From Rebecca billardiae RCC1528 (lineage: Eukaryota > Protista > Haptophyta): DNA of 64,000 nucleotides. A program made the translations under genes and the position numbers. A model generated the notes under the pieces. It was not told the origin of the DNA. It saw nothing but the letters and a program-made list of their open reading frames with translations, and did not search any database. Below are positions 10,071 through 15,684 of this stretch, piece by piece (the stretch's first letter is position 1; every line of letters starts with the position of its first letter). The DNA lies in the NCBI GenBank assembly GCA_965240325.2, contig OZ251238.1:868001-932000 (forward strand), written 5' to 3'.

Positions 10071-11102
10071 ATGGTCCTGACGGCGCCCTACCAGCAGTAC
10101 ACGGCTCTCGTGTACGGTGCCGGCGTGCTCCTCCCCATCACGTCGCTCTTGCGCGCCGCTCTTGGGCTGCCACTCGGCCTCGCGCTGCTGCCGCTCATGT
10201 GTGCTGGCTGGGTTCGGCTCTACTACGCGACGACGCGCGCATTCCCGGGCCTCAAGATGACCGCGCTCAAGATCGTGACGGTGCGCGCCGAGCTGCACGC
10301 GATGGGTCTGCGCGAGGACCCCGCCTCCGCCGCCCTCCTCCGCTCTCTGCCGTGGGTGCCGGCGTGGGCGCGCCAGGCGATTGTCTCACACCTGCCACTC
10401 GCAAGCCTCACACCCTGGTTCGCGTTCCCGCTCGAGGGGCGGCGGCTCGAGCGCGCGATGACCGCGGACAAGGGCGTCGGCATGGTCGTCGCGCTGCGCT
10501 CGCAGCTCATCGACCGCACCCTGCGCGCGAGCGCGTCCAAGCAACTCGTCATCCTCGGCGCCGGCCTCGACACGCGCGCGCACGGCGCCCTCGGCGCCGG
10601 CCGGCGTGTGTTTGAAGTGGACCTACCCGCGACACAGGCGGCGAAGCGTGAGGCAGTGCGCGCCGCGGGCCTGGACGACTCGCACGTGACCTACGTAGGC
10701 GTCGACTTCGACTCGGACGGCGGCGCGTCGTGGCTCGACCAGCTCGTCGCCGCAGGCTTTGATCGTGCCGCTCCGGCCGTCTATATCTGGGAGGGAGTCA
10801 CCTACTATCTCCCAGAGGCGGCGGTGGATCAGACTGTGGAGCTGGTGAAGCAGTGCGCGCCCGGCACGGTGCTTGCGCTGGACTACTTCACGGCCGAGCT
10901 GGTGAGCGGCGAGCTCTTCCCGTTCGGCTCGCGCGAGCTCAAGGGCTGGGCAGAGCCCCTTCGCTCGTGGATCGGCGCCGCTGCGGACGAGGAGCCCGCA
11001 CGCGCGTGGGCGGAGGCGCACGGCCTTATCCTGCGCGACTGGATGTGCGGTGGGCCGAAGGGCGCCCGGTGGGGTGGGGCGTGTGCCGTTGAGGTGCGCT
11101 AG
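10071..11102 (+). CDS. SAM-dependent methyltransferase (LCM/YktD/Rv0731c-like) with N-terminal hydrophobic segments
   Basis: QLVILGAGLDTRA, VFEVDLPATQAAKR, VGVDF, IWEGVTYYL motifs. Confidence 0.88.
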   Translation: MVLTAPYQQYTALVYGAGVLLPITSLLRAALGLPLGLALLPLMCAGWVRLYYATTRAFPGLKMTALKIVTVRAELHAMGLREDPASAALLRSLPWVPAWARQAIVSHLPLASLTPWFAFPLEGRRLERAMTADKGVGMVVALRSQLIDRTLRASASKQLVILGAGLDTRAHGALGAGRRVFEVDLPATQAAKREAVRAAGLDDSHVTYVGVDFDSDGGASWLDQLVAAGFDRAAPAVYIWEGVTYYLPEAAVDQTVELVKQCAPGTVLALDYFTAELVSGELFPFGSRELKGWAEPLRSWIGAAADEEPARAWAEAHGLILRDWMCGGPKGARWGGACAVEVR

Positions 11103-11682
11103 CGAGGGAACCGCGGCACTCTCGGACTCTCCACGGCATCGGCACTGGCTTCCACCCCTCCAACTTCAAATCACCATGCTGGTTGTACGAAGTCACCGCT
11201 ACTCTGAGGTGCTACAAGCCTTCCGATATGGCATCCGTGGGCCTTTCGGTGGCAGAAAGCATTAAGGCCAACCGCGCTGTGCCCAACCGTCACGCGCGCG
11301 GGTACCGCGACGGTGCGTGCCGTGCCGCGCCCGTCACCGACTGCCGCTAGAATCCAGCTTTCATCCGCCTGATGGGCCAGTGGCCAGTCTGAGCAGGCCC
11401 CCAAGCGCCCCCTGATCGCGACGGTAGCTGGTGAGCATCCCTGTAAGCGGGGCGTCTGCCCAGTCCGCGGCCGACGGCGAGCCTTCATCATTTGTCGAGC
11501 CGTCATCGTGCGAATTGCGAACGATTTACAGATTTCGTCACTCTCGACGGTACCTCTTGACCCGCGCGCGTGCGCAAACACGTCGTTGCAGTCAGTGGCC
11601 GCGAGTGACGAGGCCAGCTTCCGGAGACCTCGCTCGCCGCTGCAAGCTCGCCGGCCGCGGGAAGTGCGCCGGGGCGCACGCC

Positions 11683-14482
11683 ATGTCTTGGGCGATGGCC
11701 ATCGGCTTTGGTCGCGCGCTGCGGCAGGTGGGCCGCGCGCACGCACCGCATACGCGCGTGCGACCTCGCGCGCCGCGGTGCCTCGCGTGTCGCCGACCCT
11801 TTTCCCCGCTGCGCGCCGTTCGCGCGCGTGTGCCCGGCGCATGGGACCAGGTGTGCCGGCCGACGCGCAGGCCGGCACAGCGCGCCTTGTCGGTTCTCTC
11901 GTCGCCGCCTCCGCCCGGGTACACGCCTTTCCGCCTGCACGACTCCTTCGTCGCCGAGTACGCGCGCGTCGAGCCCGAGTTCGGCTTCAACGGCCTTGGC
12001 AAGCTTGTGTTCGAGCGCACCTACTCGCGGCCACTCGGCGGCGGCAGGCGCGAGCGCTGGTTCGAGACCGTGGAGCGCGTGGTGAACGGGACGTTCAACA
12101 TGCAGAAGCAGTGGCTCGAGCACCACGAGCTGCGCTGGGACGCGGGCGAGATGCAGGACACCGCGCAGGACATGTACGAGCGCATCTTCACGATGAAGTT
12201 CTTGCCGCCCGGCCGCGGGCTGTGGGCGATGGGCACGCCGATCACGGAGGAGCGGCGGCTGTTTGCCGCGCTGAACAACTGCGCGTTCGTGAGCACGGAC
12301 GCGATCGAGGACGACTTCGCCGCGCCGTTCGCCTTCCTCATGGAGGCCGCCATGCTCGGCGTCGGCGTCGGCTTTGACACGCGCGGCGCGCACACGATCC
12401 TCGTCCGGCGGCCGACAGGCGCGCAGCCGCTGACGTACGTGATCGCGGACTCCCGCGAGGGCTGGGTGGGCTCGCTGCGCGCGCTGCTCGAGAGCTACGC
12501 GCACGGCTCCGCGCCCGTGGTACGCGCGCGTCGTCCCGACCTCCGGCCGGCGCGGCGCGCTCGCGAATCGGCAGCGGCAGCGGTCGGGGGCATGGCCCGC
12601 TCGCGCGCCGGTTGACCGCCGCGCCTATGCACCACCGACCGGCACGCGTGCTCGCGCGCGTATTTCACGCGCGCAGGAGTTCGACTACAGCCTCGTGCGT
12701 CCGGCGGGCTCGCCGATCCGCGGCTTCGGCGGCATCGCCTCGGGCCCCGGCCCGCTGCGCGAGCTGCACGAGACGGCGCGCGCCGCGCTGGAGCGAAACG
12801 TCGGCCAGCCTGTGAGCGTCACGACCATCGTCGACATCATGAACCTGGTCGGCAAGTGCGTCGTGGCGGGGAACGTGCGGCGCACGGCGGAGATCGCGTT
12901 CGGCGACCCGCGCTCCGACGAGTACATCGACCTGAAGAACTACGAGGTCAACCCGCAGCGCATGTCGTACGGCTGGACGTCGAACAACTCCGTGTTTGCC
13001 GAGCTCGGCATGGACTACTCTCCTCTCGTGCGCAGGATCGTGGCCAACGGCGAGCCTGGGTTCGCGTGGCTGGACAACATGCGCTCGTACGGCCGGATGA
13101 ACGGCGTGCCCGACCGCTCGGACTGGCGCGCGTCGGGCGGGAACCCGTGCCTCGAGCAGACGCTCGAGTCCTTCGAGCTCTGCTGCCTCGTCGAGACGTT
13201 CCCGGCCAAGCACACGGACCTCGAAGACTTCAAGCGCACGCTCGACGCCGCCTTCCACTACGCCAAGACGGTCACACTGGGCGAGACGCAGTGGCCGGCG
13301 ACGAACGCGGTGATGCGGCGCAACCGGCGGATCGGCTGCTCGATCTCGGGGGTCGCGCAGTTCATCTCGAGGTGCGCCGCGCCCACGGCGCGCTTGCGGC
13401 GCGCGCGCCCGTCGGCGCGCGCGCGACTCAACCGTGCCGCGCGCCACCGCCGCCGCGCCCGCGTCTCGGCCCGCCGCGCGCGCAGCCGCGGGCTGGGCGA
13501 GCTGCGCGAGTGGTGCGAGGCCGGGTACGGCGAGCTGCGCGACATCGACGCCAAGTACTCCCACCGCTTCGGCATCCCGCGCTCAGTCAAGCTCACCTCC
13601 GTCAAGCCGAGCGGCTCAGTCTCGCTGCTCGCGGGCGCGACGCCCGGCCTCCATTTCCCAGAGTCGAGGTTCTATGTGCGGCGCATGCGGCTGCCGCGGC
13701 TCTCGCCTCTGGTCGAGCGGCTGGTGGCGGCGGGTCTGACGGTGGAGCCCGCGGTGGGCGACGAGGAGCAGACGCTCGTCGTCGAGTTCCCCGTGGACGC
13801 GGGCGAGGGCGTGCGCTCCGTCCACGAGCTCTCGATGTGGGAGCAGCTCTCGCTCGCCGCCTTCTTGCAGCGCCACTGGGCTGACAACCAGGTGTCCTGC
13901 ACGGTCACGTTCGACCCGGAGACGGAGGCCTCGAGCCTCGCGTCGGCGCTTGACTACTTCCAGTACCAGCTGAAGGGCGTGTCGTTCCTGCCGCGCCTCG
14001 CCGACGCGACCGCGTACCCGCAGATGCCGTACGAGAAGATCTCCGAGGAGGAGTACGAGGCGATGATGGCGCGCGTGCGCATGGACGTGCTCTATGCCGA
14101 GGAGCGCGAGCAGCGCGGCGCGGGCGGCGCACGCGCGGACGCCTGCGCGGGGGCGGACGCGGGGGCGGCGCTGGGCGCGCCCGGCGGGCGCGGAGCGTCG
14201 GGCGACGCAGCGGGCGCCGGCGGCGCGGAGTGGGCAGCGCGGGGGCGCAAGCCGGCCGCGCCGCCGAGCGCGGACCCAACGGCGGACGAGCAGCACGCGA
14301 TGCACGCGGCCGACCACACGCCCGACATCTTCTGCGACTCCGACCGGTGCGTGCAGGAGGAGGTGCGGTCGATCGCGCGCAGCATGTCCGCCAGCGGGCT
14401 CAACGGCGCGGGCAAGCAGTCGCAAAGACGCGCGGCGGCAGCTGGCGGCGGCGGCGGCGGCAGTCTAGGCAGCGACTCGTAA
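11683..14482 (+). CDS. nrdJ: Class II adenosylcobalamin-dependent monomeric ribonucleotide reductase (RTPR/NrdJm type), 4 exons, putative organellar presequence
   Basis: GFNGLGKLVFERTYSR, FLPPGRGLWAMG, LNNCAF, VVAGNVRRTAEI, GWTSNNS, NGEPG, GGNPCLEQ (radical Cys), ELCCLVET, RNRRIGCS, TSVKPSGSVSLL, WADNQVSCT, YPQMPYE, C-terminal FCDSDRC. Introns 11728-11850 (acceptor uncertain), 12520-12676, 13372-13485. Confidence 0.95.
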
Positions 14483-14675: not shown

Positions 14676-15684
14676 CGGGTGAGTAATGCAAGTACTCTCC
14701 GGGAGAACCAGGGTATTTAAGATAGTTCAGGAGATCTCCCGGACTCTCTCAACTGCCGTGACGAAACACAAGAAGTTGGTCCGCTGGGGCCGCGGGGCGC
14801 GATGGCAGCCGTGCCCCCGTGCGCTCGGGCGGCCACTCGCCCGCCGTGTGCGTGGCAATGTGCGCGTCAGCACCGGCTGGGACGTGCCTACGGGATGATA
14901 TTGGCTATGAACGTCCCATCAGTGCGCTTGAATGACCGTGTTGCGCGCGTGTGATGCAGTACGCGTGCACCGCTGTGCTTGTTCGCCCGTGCTCGTCTGT
15001 TGCGCCGAACGCGCGGCTGGCACGAGGTTGTGCTCGGTGAGCGAGTACCGACTCGGGCCGTTGACGGCATGTACATGGCATCTGCCCTTGCTCCTGCCGC
15101 GCACCATCCCCTACAGCTGCGTTCTCCGGAGGAGCACGCATGCCAAGCTATCTCAAGCATTACGCCACTAGACAGGCCATTACAGGCATTACTTTTCAAT
15201 TTGAAATGCCTTTGAGCCCGGAATACACCATGCAGCATGCGTGCTTCGAAGTGCACCGAAAGATGCGATGCGACGCGACCGTGGAGATGGTGAAGCGTTG
15301 AGAGAGCGGCATAATCTCACACAAACGCTTGGTGGCTTCAGTCAGTACTCGCTCGCCGAGCACGACCTCGTGCCAGCCGCGCGTTCGGCGCAAGCGACGA
15401 GCACGGGCGAACAAGCACAGCGGTGCACGCGTACTGCATCACGCGCGCGCAACACGGTCATTCAAGCGCACTGATGGGACGTCCATAGCCCATATCATCC
15501 CGTAGGCACGTCCCAGCCGGTGCTGACGCGCACATTGCCACGCACATGGCGGGCGAGTGGCCGCCCGAGCGCACGGGGGCACGGCTACCATCGCGCCCCG
15601 CCCGCGCGGCCCCAGCGGACCAACTTCTTGTGTTTCGTCACCTCCCGGACTTTCCGCCCTGAACTATCTTATATTACTCATCCG
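14676..15684. repeat. Long inverted repeat / foldback element: ~290-bp arms (14758-15048, 15344-15641), ~295-bp spacer, degenerate outer extensions
   Basis: Arm 2 is the reverse complement of arm 1 with scattered substitutions. Outer matches TAAGATAGTTCAGG/CCTGAACTATCTTA and TGAGTAAT/ATTACTCA. Confidence 0.95.

Follow-up and report, generated by a model that had tools for sequence, protein, structure and literature searches.

A monomeric class II ribonucleotide reductase gene with a mitochondrial-import-like leader in an alga

Monomeric class II ribonucleotide reductases (RNRs) are of bacterial origin and patchily distributed in eukaryotes, where they have been described in Euglena gracilis, Dictyostelium discoideum, Phytophthora, Nannochloropsis, haptophytes and chlorarachniophytes (PMC3019208, PMC3605638, PMC3566019, PMC11439496). 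The role of the enzyme was called "enigmatic" in a Dictyostelium study (PMC3605638). A recent survey of algal B12 metabolism (PMC11439496) reports RNR-II in haptophytes and describes it as cytosolic, and finds no consistent targeting pattern among B12-related proteins except MCM and CblF. The same survey quotes a human-based scheme in which AdoCbl is made in mitochondria, and states that algal copies of methylmalonyl-CoA mutase usually have predictable mitochondrial targeting sequences. A class II RNR targeted to the mitochondrion, or one carrying an N-terminal targeting-like extension, was not found in the literature searched. The gene type is therefore known in such algae, and what is new at the locus described here is a leader that resembles a mitochondrial import signal. 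Almost all eukaryotic relatives also look to carry a leader of this kind, in contrast to the cytosolic view in the literature.

Gene structure and enzyme type

The gene occupies positions 11683-14482 of the window, the 64,000-nt stretch of DNA that was analyzed and within which all coordinates are given, and it lies on the + strand, as do all features described below. It is intact, with four exons and three introns, and the spliced coding sequence of 2406 nt encodes 801 amino acids. The leader begins in exon 1 (11683..11727), which encodes residues 1-15 (MSWAMAIGFGRALRQ). The remainder of the leader, to approximately residue 38 (nt 11919), is encoded by exon 2 (11851..12519) together with the RNR_Alpha domain and C159. 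The barrel core lies in exon 3 (12677..13371), with C396 and C407 and a portion of the insertion domain. Exon 4 (13486..14482) completes the barrel with its C-terminal half and goes on to encode an Ala/Gly-rich insert of 69 residues (14105-14311), the redox pair of the C-terminus, and a tail of 43 residues that follows the pair and ends at a TAA stop codon.

All three introns are of the GT..AG type. Spliced transcripts from two relatives (L007 and L001; blastn), in which orthologs are transcribed, confirm introns 2 and 3 with an uncertainty of a few bases at the boundaries, and protein collinearity with homologs agrees with both introns. Intron 2 (12520..12676; 157 nt, GTACGC...CGCAG) is frame-shifting and is missing from transcript L001, which joins 12520 to ~12677. 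Intron 3 (13372..13485; 114 nt, GTGCGC...CGCAG) is in frame without a stop codon, and both transcripts join 13371 to ~13486; its position is common to a relative, as seen in the P0002/P0121 read-through. Intron 1 (11728..11850; 123 nt, GTGGGC...CCAG) is predicted on indirect evidence. The spliced 801-residue product was absent from the protein-search matches, which returned the genomic read-through ORF P0001 alone.

The assignment as an intron-containing, monomeric, Lactobacillus-type class II RNR (RTPR) is firmly supported by sequence comparison. The RTPR model TIGR02505 matches the three large exons with E-values of 2e-21, 8.5e-39 and 4.5e-36 (75.7, 133.3 and 124.3 bits for the separate pieces, the curated equivalog cut-off of 340 applying to the whole protein). 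As whole proteins, the ortholog P0004 scores 331 bits, just under the cut-off, and P0005, P0076 and P0112 score 350-369. The RNR_Alpha domain PF17975 is matched in exon 2 over its entire profile (1-101 of 101; E-value 2.6e-38, 131 bits against a cut-off of 26.4), and phmmer comparison with the Lactobacillus leichmannii RTPR 1L1L gave an E-value of 2.8e-68. The RTPR model also scores far higher than the NDP-reductase model NrdJ_Z (255.6 bits versus 44.8 bits). The insertion domain, PF21995, straddles intron 2, with exon 3 alone covering profile positions 72-99 at 25 bits (cut-off 27); it is present in P0004 and in every eukaryote-type homolog, and the TIGR02505 alignment is unbroken across the region. 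This domain is specific to monomeric enzymes, where it replaces the dimer interface.

All five hallmark cysteines are present. The cysteine of LNNC (C159, codon 12280-12282 in exon 2) aligns with C119 of 1L1L, that of NPCLE (C396, codon 13148-13150 in exon 3) with C408, the thiyl radical site, and that of ELCC (C407, codon 13181-13183 in exon 3) with C419. The redox pair C753/C758 lies in the sequence FCDSDRC (14330-14350), and this F-C-D-x3-C motif is invariant across the eukaryote-type homologs (alignment A1). The first-pass annotation had named the gene an intron-containing monomeric class II RNR with a full set of hallmark cysteines (NNC, NPCxE, ELCC and a C-terminal CxxxxC); these claims are borne out by the TIGR02505, PF17975 and 1L1L matches and by the alignments, and its four-exon model was reproduced. 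The best explanation of the product is a functional RTPR-type, AdoCbl-dependent, thioredoxin-recycled ribonucleoside-triphosphate reductase, an activity predicted from sequence.

Like the L. leichmannii RTPR (PDB 1L1L; TIGR02505; EC 1.17.4.2), the enzyme has an RNR_Alpha domain, a barrel, and an insertion domain mimicking a dimer interface, as well as the equivalents of the thiyl-radical cysteine C408, the redox pair C119/C419 and the C-terminal CxxxxC. It differs in being encoded by a nuclear gene with three spliceosomal introns and in its 38-residue basic leader, 69-residue Ala/Gly-rich insert and 43-residue tail. Approximately 38 residues of 1L1L at the position of intron 3 are missing here and in the other aligned homologs, both eukaryote-type and prokaryote/phage-type.

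Start codon and properties of the leader

The leader comprises 38 residues beyond the prokaryote-type homologs, with 58 residues before the conserved FGFNGLG motif, and its sequence as quoted in the first-pass annotation is correct for the spliced model. The ATG at 11683 is the first in-frame ATG after a stop codon at 11425, with none between the two in a scan of the window. Before the domain, the sole other ATG is codon 5. A start downstream of the presequence, which the first-pass annotation had raised as an alternative, would fall at the next in-frame ATG (12100), which lies within RNR_Alpha, 3′ of FGFNGLG. Because no alternative start codon yields the full enzyme, the leader is obligatory.

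Six arginines are found in the leader (residues 11, 14, 18, 21, 22, and 26) and no aspartate or glutamate, the first acidic residue being at position 46. The first-pass annotation had proposed a mitochondrial presequence from this Arg/Ala/Ser-rich, acid-free composition, an argument which is weak in this GC-rich genome, where acid-free translations with at least six basic residues make up 18% of random stop-free 38-residue sequences from this window. Composition as sufficient evidence for a presequence was rejected after this genome-specific null. The arrangement of the residues is far less common. The hydrophobic moment of the leader is 0.99 for an 11-mer and 0.87 for an 18-mer (residues 9-26). 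When 5809 stop-free 38-mers were drawn at random from this window, 0.07% of them reached its moment, as did 0.1% of the acid-free, basic ones, and shuffling the residues of the leader 5000 times never did so. Two prolines (Pro19 and Pro23) fall inside the amphipathic segment. Within exon 2, the sequence R26-A-L|S-V fits the R-3 motif RX(F/Y/L)|(S/A), placing a candidate MPP site after residue 28 (nt 11889); this is a regular-expression match of low specificity, and the corresponding sequence in P0004 is R-P-L|A-A.

These properties are those of the predicted spliced form, and the N-terminus could instead be mis-modeled, with intron 1 retained to give a leader of 79 residues or with a different first exon. 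Retention would leave the reading frame open, as this intron is in frame and stop-free, and of the three acceptors its CCAG departs most from the typical form. Against this, codon usage favors exon 1 as coding in frame (log-odds +1.08) but not intron 1 (-0.44), and all three donors fit GTRNGC. Furthermore, the helical period of the arginines spans the junction of exons 1 and 2, and the 18-residue moment falls from 0.87 in the spliced form to 0.66 when the intron is retained, the periodicity being exceptional in the spliced form alone. We consider a mis-modeled N-terminus improbable, and since the retained leader, with a single acidic residue among its 79, is still basic, the case for targeting would hold in that event too.

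The best reading of the leader, and a somewhat probable one, is that it is a mitochondrial targeting presequence. No signal-peptide h-region was found in the leader, where the maximum 12-residue Kyte-Doolittle mean is 0.95 (a heuristic rather than SignalP), and the first ten residues (MSWAMAIGFG) are mildly hydrophobic.

N-terminal extensions in homologous enzymes

In a phylogenetic tree, a branch with SH-aLRT support of 100 has all 14 eukaryote-type sequences (12 full-length and 2 partial) together on the same side. Extensions of 29-154 residues are found at the N-terminus in 11 of the 12 full-length homologs of this type, whereas prokaryote/phage-type homologs have 19-26 residues before FGFNGLG, mostly 20, and no extension. 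The gene model from Acanthamoeba has none either. Near-universal presence in the eukaryote-type group and absence from the prokaryote/phage-type one suggests that the extensions arose after the gene had passed to eukaryotes and have been retained since. Balamuthia "variant 2" was considered as a leaderless isoform and rejected, as it has the leader and differs elsewhere. Together, the 11 extensions contain six acidic residues, compared to ~51 expected (first 40 residues or fewer of each).

The enzyme could alternatively be cytosolic, in agreement with the statement of PMC11439496, with the extension a disordered, non-targeting or poorly imported appendage that owes its appearance in part to GC-rich codons. 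The frequency of acid-free, basic translations in this genome is consistent with such an origin. So are the homologous extensions, which vary widely in length, are Ser-rich and of low complexity in the amoebae, and are not significantly amphipathic by the measure used, so that amphipathicity is not claimed for the clan. However, the amphipathicity of the leader in the window far exceeds that of the GC-rich null, and acid depletion is also evident in homologs from loci of ~48-49% GC (P0076 and P0005), where codon bias offers no explanation. The restriction of near-universal extensions to the eukaryote-type clan also argues against a non-targeting appendage. Overall, we regard a cytosolic enzyme as unlikely, although it is the strongest competitor to mitochondrial import.

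A second alternative is a plastid signal, or a dual plastid and mitochondrial one, with the leader as its transit peptide and the enzyme supplying dNTPs for plastid DNA; an upstream signal-peptide exon would have been missed, or import would need none. Transit peptides are likewise poor in acidic residues and rich in basic and hydroxylated ones, the 5′ end of the gene is predicted, and the transcript of P0004 has 22 nt 5′ of its ATG without a stop codon, so its N-terminus could be incomplete. The mild hydrophobicity of the first ten residues would also fit. In contrast, signal-peptide-like hydrophobicity is absent from all 11 extensions (maximum 12-residue mean ≤1.35), including those of three homologs in which an in-frame stop upstream fixes the start codon, and the stretch between the stop at 11425 and the start codon offers no ATG for a longer first exon. 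The same kind of extension is also found in the plastid-less heterotrophs Rigifila ramosa and Balamuthia mandrillaris, and a plastid signal therefore seems very improbable. The case against it presupposes in part that the alga is a haptophyte. For the mitochondrial presequence proposed in the first-pass annotation, the in silico support thus comes from an obligatory leader, an amphipathic basic helix, the lack of a signal-peptide core and the extensions of the homologs, rather than from composition.

Predicted role and comparison with known systems

We infer a scheme covering localization, AdoCbl use, a role in mtDNA synthesis and the sparing of O2 and iron, together with expression of this copy. 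The enzyme would be synthesized with a matrix-targeting presequence of approximately 28-38 residues, imported as this precursor into mitochondria through TOM/TIM, and cleaved by MPP near RAL|SV. AdoCbl would be supplied by a matrix CblB-type adenosyltransferase, from a pool shared with methylmalonyl-CoA mutase. The enzyme could then supply mtDNA synthesis with dNTPs by reducing matrix NTPs directly and, unlike class I RNR, would need no O2 or di-iron, and the C-terminal cysteine pair would be re-reduced by a mitochondrial thioredoxin. That the enzyme, as a predicted AdoCbl-dependent RNR, would add to the AdoCbl demand of the alga, as the first-pass annotation had suggested, is well supported at the sequence level, although RNR-II in haptophytes has already been published (PMC11439496); a mitochondrial location would place this extra demand on the matrix pool.

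More tentatively, it is possible but somewhat doubtful that a location in the mitochondrial matrix is shared by all eukaryote-type RTPRs, those of Rigifila and Balamuthia as well as those of haptophyte-like algae, and that the clan acts there as a de novo dNTP synthase independent of O2 and iron that works beside AdoCbl synthesis. If so, this would explain why an "enigmatic" class II enzyme is kept in eukaryotes that also have class I RNR, and would make the clan the first dedicated organellar ribonucleotide reductase. A reductase within mitochondria would also supply a concrete function for class II RNRs, patchy as they are in eukaryotes, and would tie mitochondrial genome maintenance to B12 supply in algal ecology.

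The enzyme is of the same type as the class II RNRs described in other eukaryotes, for which the literature gives a cytosolic location or an "enigmatic" role. Methylmalonyl-CoA mutase, whose mitochondrial location is established, is likewise AdoCbl-dependent, but it is a carbon-skeleton mutase of unrelated fold and chemistry and has no role in dNTP supply. Organellar dNTPs are usually explained by import and salvage. In animals, mitochondrial dNTPs come from cytosolic class I RNR (including p53R2) followed by import, and from the matrix salvage kinases TK2 and DGUOK. The need met here would be the same and the solution different, as an RTPR in the matrix would allow de novo dNTP synthesis on site, with NTPs as the starting material.

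Gene structure and identity of the encoded enzyme

A four-exon, three-intron gene for a predicted monomeric class II ribonucleotide reductase (RNR) was proposed at 11683-14482 by the first-pass annotation, and we reproduced this model from the sequence. Exons at 11683-11727, 11851-12519, 12677-13371, and 13486-14482, all on the forward strand, form a 2406-nt coding sequence for an 801-aa protein. The introns are 123, 157, and 114 nt long, all with GT..AG boundaries and GTRNGC donors. Neither intron 1 nor intron 3 shifts the reading frame or contains an in-frame stop, which accounts for a 595-aa read-through ORF (P0001) in ORF lists and the protein collection.

In a multiple alignment, intron-less and transcript-derived homologues were collinear with the model across the exon boundaries at introns 2 and 3. 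Transcripts from two relatives were also compared to the window at the DNA level. L007, from a close relative with 87% identity across exon 3, joins 13371 to ~13486, and L001, from a more distant one, lacks introns 2 and 3, which confirms both introns and expression of the orthologues in the source organisms. A third relative, represented by a genomic ORF (P0002/P0121), has an intron exactly at the intron 3 position, after QFIS, whose read-through adds 57 aa to the predicted proteins, indicating that the intron position is conserved in this clade. The N-terminal leader is not conserved in sequence, and splicing of intron 1 is favored indirectly, by codon usage (log-odds: exon 1, +1.08; intron 1, -0.44) and by a helical arginine pattern in the leader that is present only once intron 1 is removed.

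The three large exons match TIGR02505, the NCBIfam model for adenosylcobalamin (AdoCbl)-dependent ribonucleoside-triphosphate reductase (RTPR; E values of 2e-21, 8.5e-39, and 4.5e-36), with far lower scores for models of NDP reductases. Pfam matches comprised a complete RNR_Alpha domain (2.6e-38), the barrel, and a portion of the monomer-specific insertion domain. The sole match among solved structures was the Lactobacillus leichmannii RTPR (1L1L, 2.8e-68), in which C119, C408, and C419 align to the LNNC, NPCLE, and ELCC motifs (C159, C396, and C407 in our model). Eukaryote-type homologues all retain the C-terminal FCDSDRC pair (C753/C758), and the hallmark cysteines listed in the first-pass annotation are thus correct. 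A 69-aa Ala/Gly-rich low-complexity insert (14105-14311; 24 Ala, 14 Gly) separates the end of the barrel from this redox pair. It is coding, since transcripts of relatives (P0003, P0004, and P0076) carry inserts of similar length and different sequence; prokaryote/phage-type homologues lack it. The insert gives the swinging C-terminal tail a longer tether.

Upstream, at 10071-11102 on the forward strand, is an unbroken 343-aa ORF containing a leucine carboxyl methyltransferase domain (PF04072 LCM, E 5e-29); its N-terminal ~120 residues are hydrophobic or uncharacterized. Downstream, an inverted repeat (14758-15641) starts ~275 nt past the RNR stop codon, with arms of ~300 nt each (14758-15053 and 15340-15641) that are 96-98% complementary and separated by a 286-nt spacer. 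It may represent a hairpin-forming or MITE/TIR-like element, and it appears in ORF lists as mirror-image "proteins" on both strands.

Properties of the N-terminal leader

Reading on from an in-frame stop (11425), the first ATG is that at 11683. A single further ATG, at codon 5, precedes the catalytic domain; the one after it, at 12100, already falls within RNR_Alpha, past the conserved FGFNGLG motif. A complete enzyme would require translation of the leader, barring an undetected upstream exon, and with that same proviso the ATG scan places the start ahead of the putative presequence and not downstream of it, which the first-pass annotation had named as grounds for abandoning its mitochondrial reading. 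A mis-modeled N-terminus, which might involve such an exon or intron 1, is unlikely, and would probably leave the targeting reading unchanged, since a leader that keeps the intron is basic too.

Ahead of FGFNGLG, prokaryote/phage-type homologues carry 19-26 residues (20 in most), and the window protein has 38 more, including six arginines and no acidic residues. The presequence had been argued from this composition. As a genome-specific null, stop-free translations of 38 residues were taken from the window in all six frames (n = 5809), of which 22% contained no acidic residue and 18% also had at least six basic residues, making composition alone weak evidence for a presequence. The translation of intron 3 is likewise an Arg/Ala-rich, acid-free peptide. 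"Presequence-like" composition is common by chance in this GC-rich genome, and presequence calls there need the same control.

The arrangement of the residues, in contrast, was rarely matched by chance. The arginines at positions 11, 14, 18, 21, 22, and 26 follow a 3.6-residue period, and the hydrophobic moment, which like the other leader measures is a heuristic as opposed to a trained predictor, was 0.99 for an 11-residue segment and 0.87 for one of 18 residues. Of all null translations, 0.07% reached this value, as did 0.1% of those that were acid-free and basic; shuffling the leader's own residues 5000 times never produced it. A candidate R-3-type cleavage site (RAL↓SV) follows residue 28. 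Two prolines are within the amphipathic segment, and the leader contains no hydrophobic stretch of signal-peptide strength (best 12-residue Kyte-Doolittle mean, 0.95).

Extensions among eukaryote-type homologues

Two protein searches identified 14 eukaryote-type homologues among thousands of ~660-aa proteins; an Atlas look-up suggests that many of these shorter homologues are phage-encoded. Twelve of the 14 are full-length, and 11 of these have N-terminal extensions of 29-154 residues: the window protein, P0004 (a 797-aa transcript of a relative), P0005, P0076, P0112, P0123, P0124, P0127, P0132, and the proteins of Rigifila ramosa (P0007) and Balamuthia mandrillaris (P0122). The exception, an Acanthamoeba castellanii gene model (P0035), also lacks a 17-residue conserved segment (AQEMY...FLPPG) and is probably mis-modeled; its sister sequence, the 5′-partial P0125, has an extension. 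In a maximum-likelihood tree, all 14 sequences fell on one side of a branch with SH-aLRT support of 100, in agreement with a first tree, and the window protein grouped with P0003 and P0004 (SH-aLRT 100).

For three of the extended homologues, an in-frame stop farther upstream fixes the start codon. The extensions have no sequence in common, but are strongly depleted in acidic residues, with six in the pooled first ≤40 positions compared to ~51 expected from the mature parts, and depletion was individually significant (p < 0.05) in nine of the 11. GC bias cannot account for this in P0076 and P0005, as their loci are only 48-49% GC. No signal-peptide-like core was found in any of the 11, and amphipathicity of the homologues' extensions was not significant by the measure used, so this feature is not claimed for the clan. 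The leader is real; statistically it stands out from the rest of this genome, and it belongs to a pattern seen across the clan. This comparative pattern is the strongest new result, and it is undescribed in the literature searched. Rigifila and Balamuthia are heterotrophs without plastids, yet their proteins are extended, which favors a mitochondrial over a plastid destination. A plastid or dual targeting signal is very improbable.

Several records warrant comment. The Rigifila protein, from a Trinity assembly, contains an internal duplication of ~70 residues that is probably an assembly artefact. Balamuthia has several RTPR entries (P0122, P0201-P0203; 809, 812, and 675 aa, and a 603-aa partial), every one with a 144-aa, very Ser-rich N-terminal extension. 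We rejected "variant 2" as an N-terminal variant, since the annotated variant differs elsewhere. The metagenome scaffold encoding P0005 (L005, ENA, 7.9 kb, ~48% GC) is from a eukaryote with compact genes; its intron-less RTPR gene encodes a 64-aa leader and adjoins an anoctamin gene.

Proposed mitochondrial targeting and relation to known class II RNRs

Mitochondrial targeting is the reading we lean toward, at somewhat better than even odds. The enzyme family, its residues, and the leader properties are observed here, and the remaining steps draw on known RTPR chemistry and a human-based scheme of AdoCbl synthesis. The precursor would be imported via the amphipathic basic leader and cut near residue 28, and the mature RTPR would bind AdoCbl made in the matrix. 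It would then reduce NTPs directly, supplying dNTPs for mtDNA synthesis, with the active-site disulfide resolved by the C-terminal cysteine pair and a thioredoxin.

AdoCbl is produced in mitochondria by CblA/CblB (PMC11439496). The preprint of that study reported no consistent targeting pattern among B12-related proteins apart from MCM and CblF, which counts against mitochondrial targeting, though the objection is tempered by the mixed lineages in that protein set and by its many transcriptome-derived entries. A cytosolic enzyme whose extension has no targeting role is a less probable but credible alternative, to be set against the leader's rare hydrophobic moment and the acid depletion across the clan. 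Targeting to the mitochondrion is testable and not yet demonstrated.

Class II RNRs are known from eukaryotes including Euglena, Dictyostelium, Phytophthora, and Nannochloropsis (PMC3019208, PMC3605638, PMC3566019), and the role of the enzyme was called "enigmatic" in the Dictyostelium study (PMC3605638). RNR-II has been reported in haptophytes specifically (PMC11439496), so the gene as such is not new: it is an ordinary gene, encoding a known enzyme that had already been described from this lineage. The literature searched contained no proposal of a mitochondrion-targeted class II RNR, and the clan-wide pattern of extensions contradicts the usual depiction of RNR-II as cytosolic.
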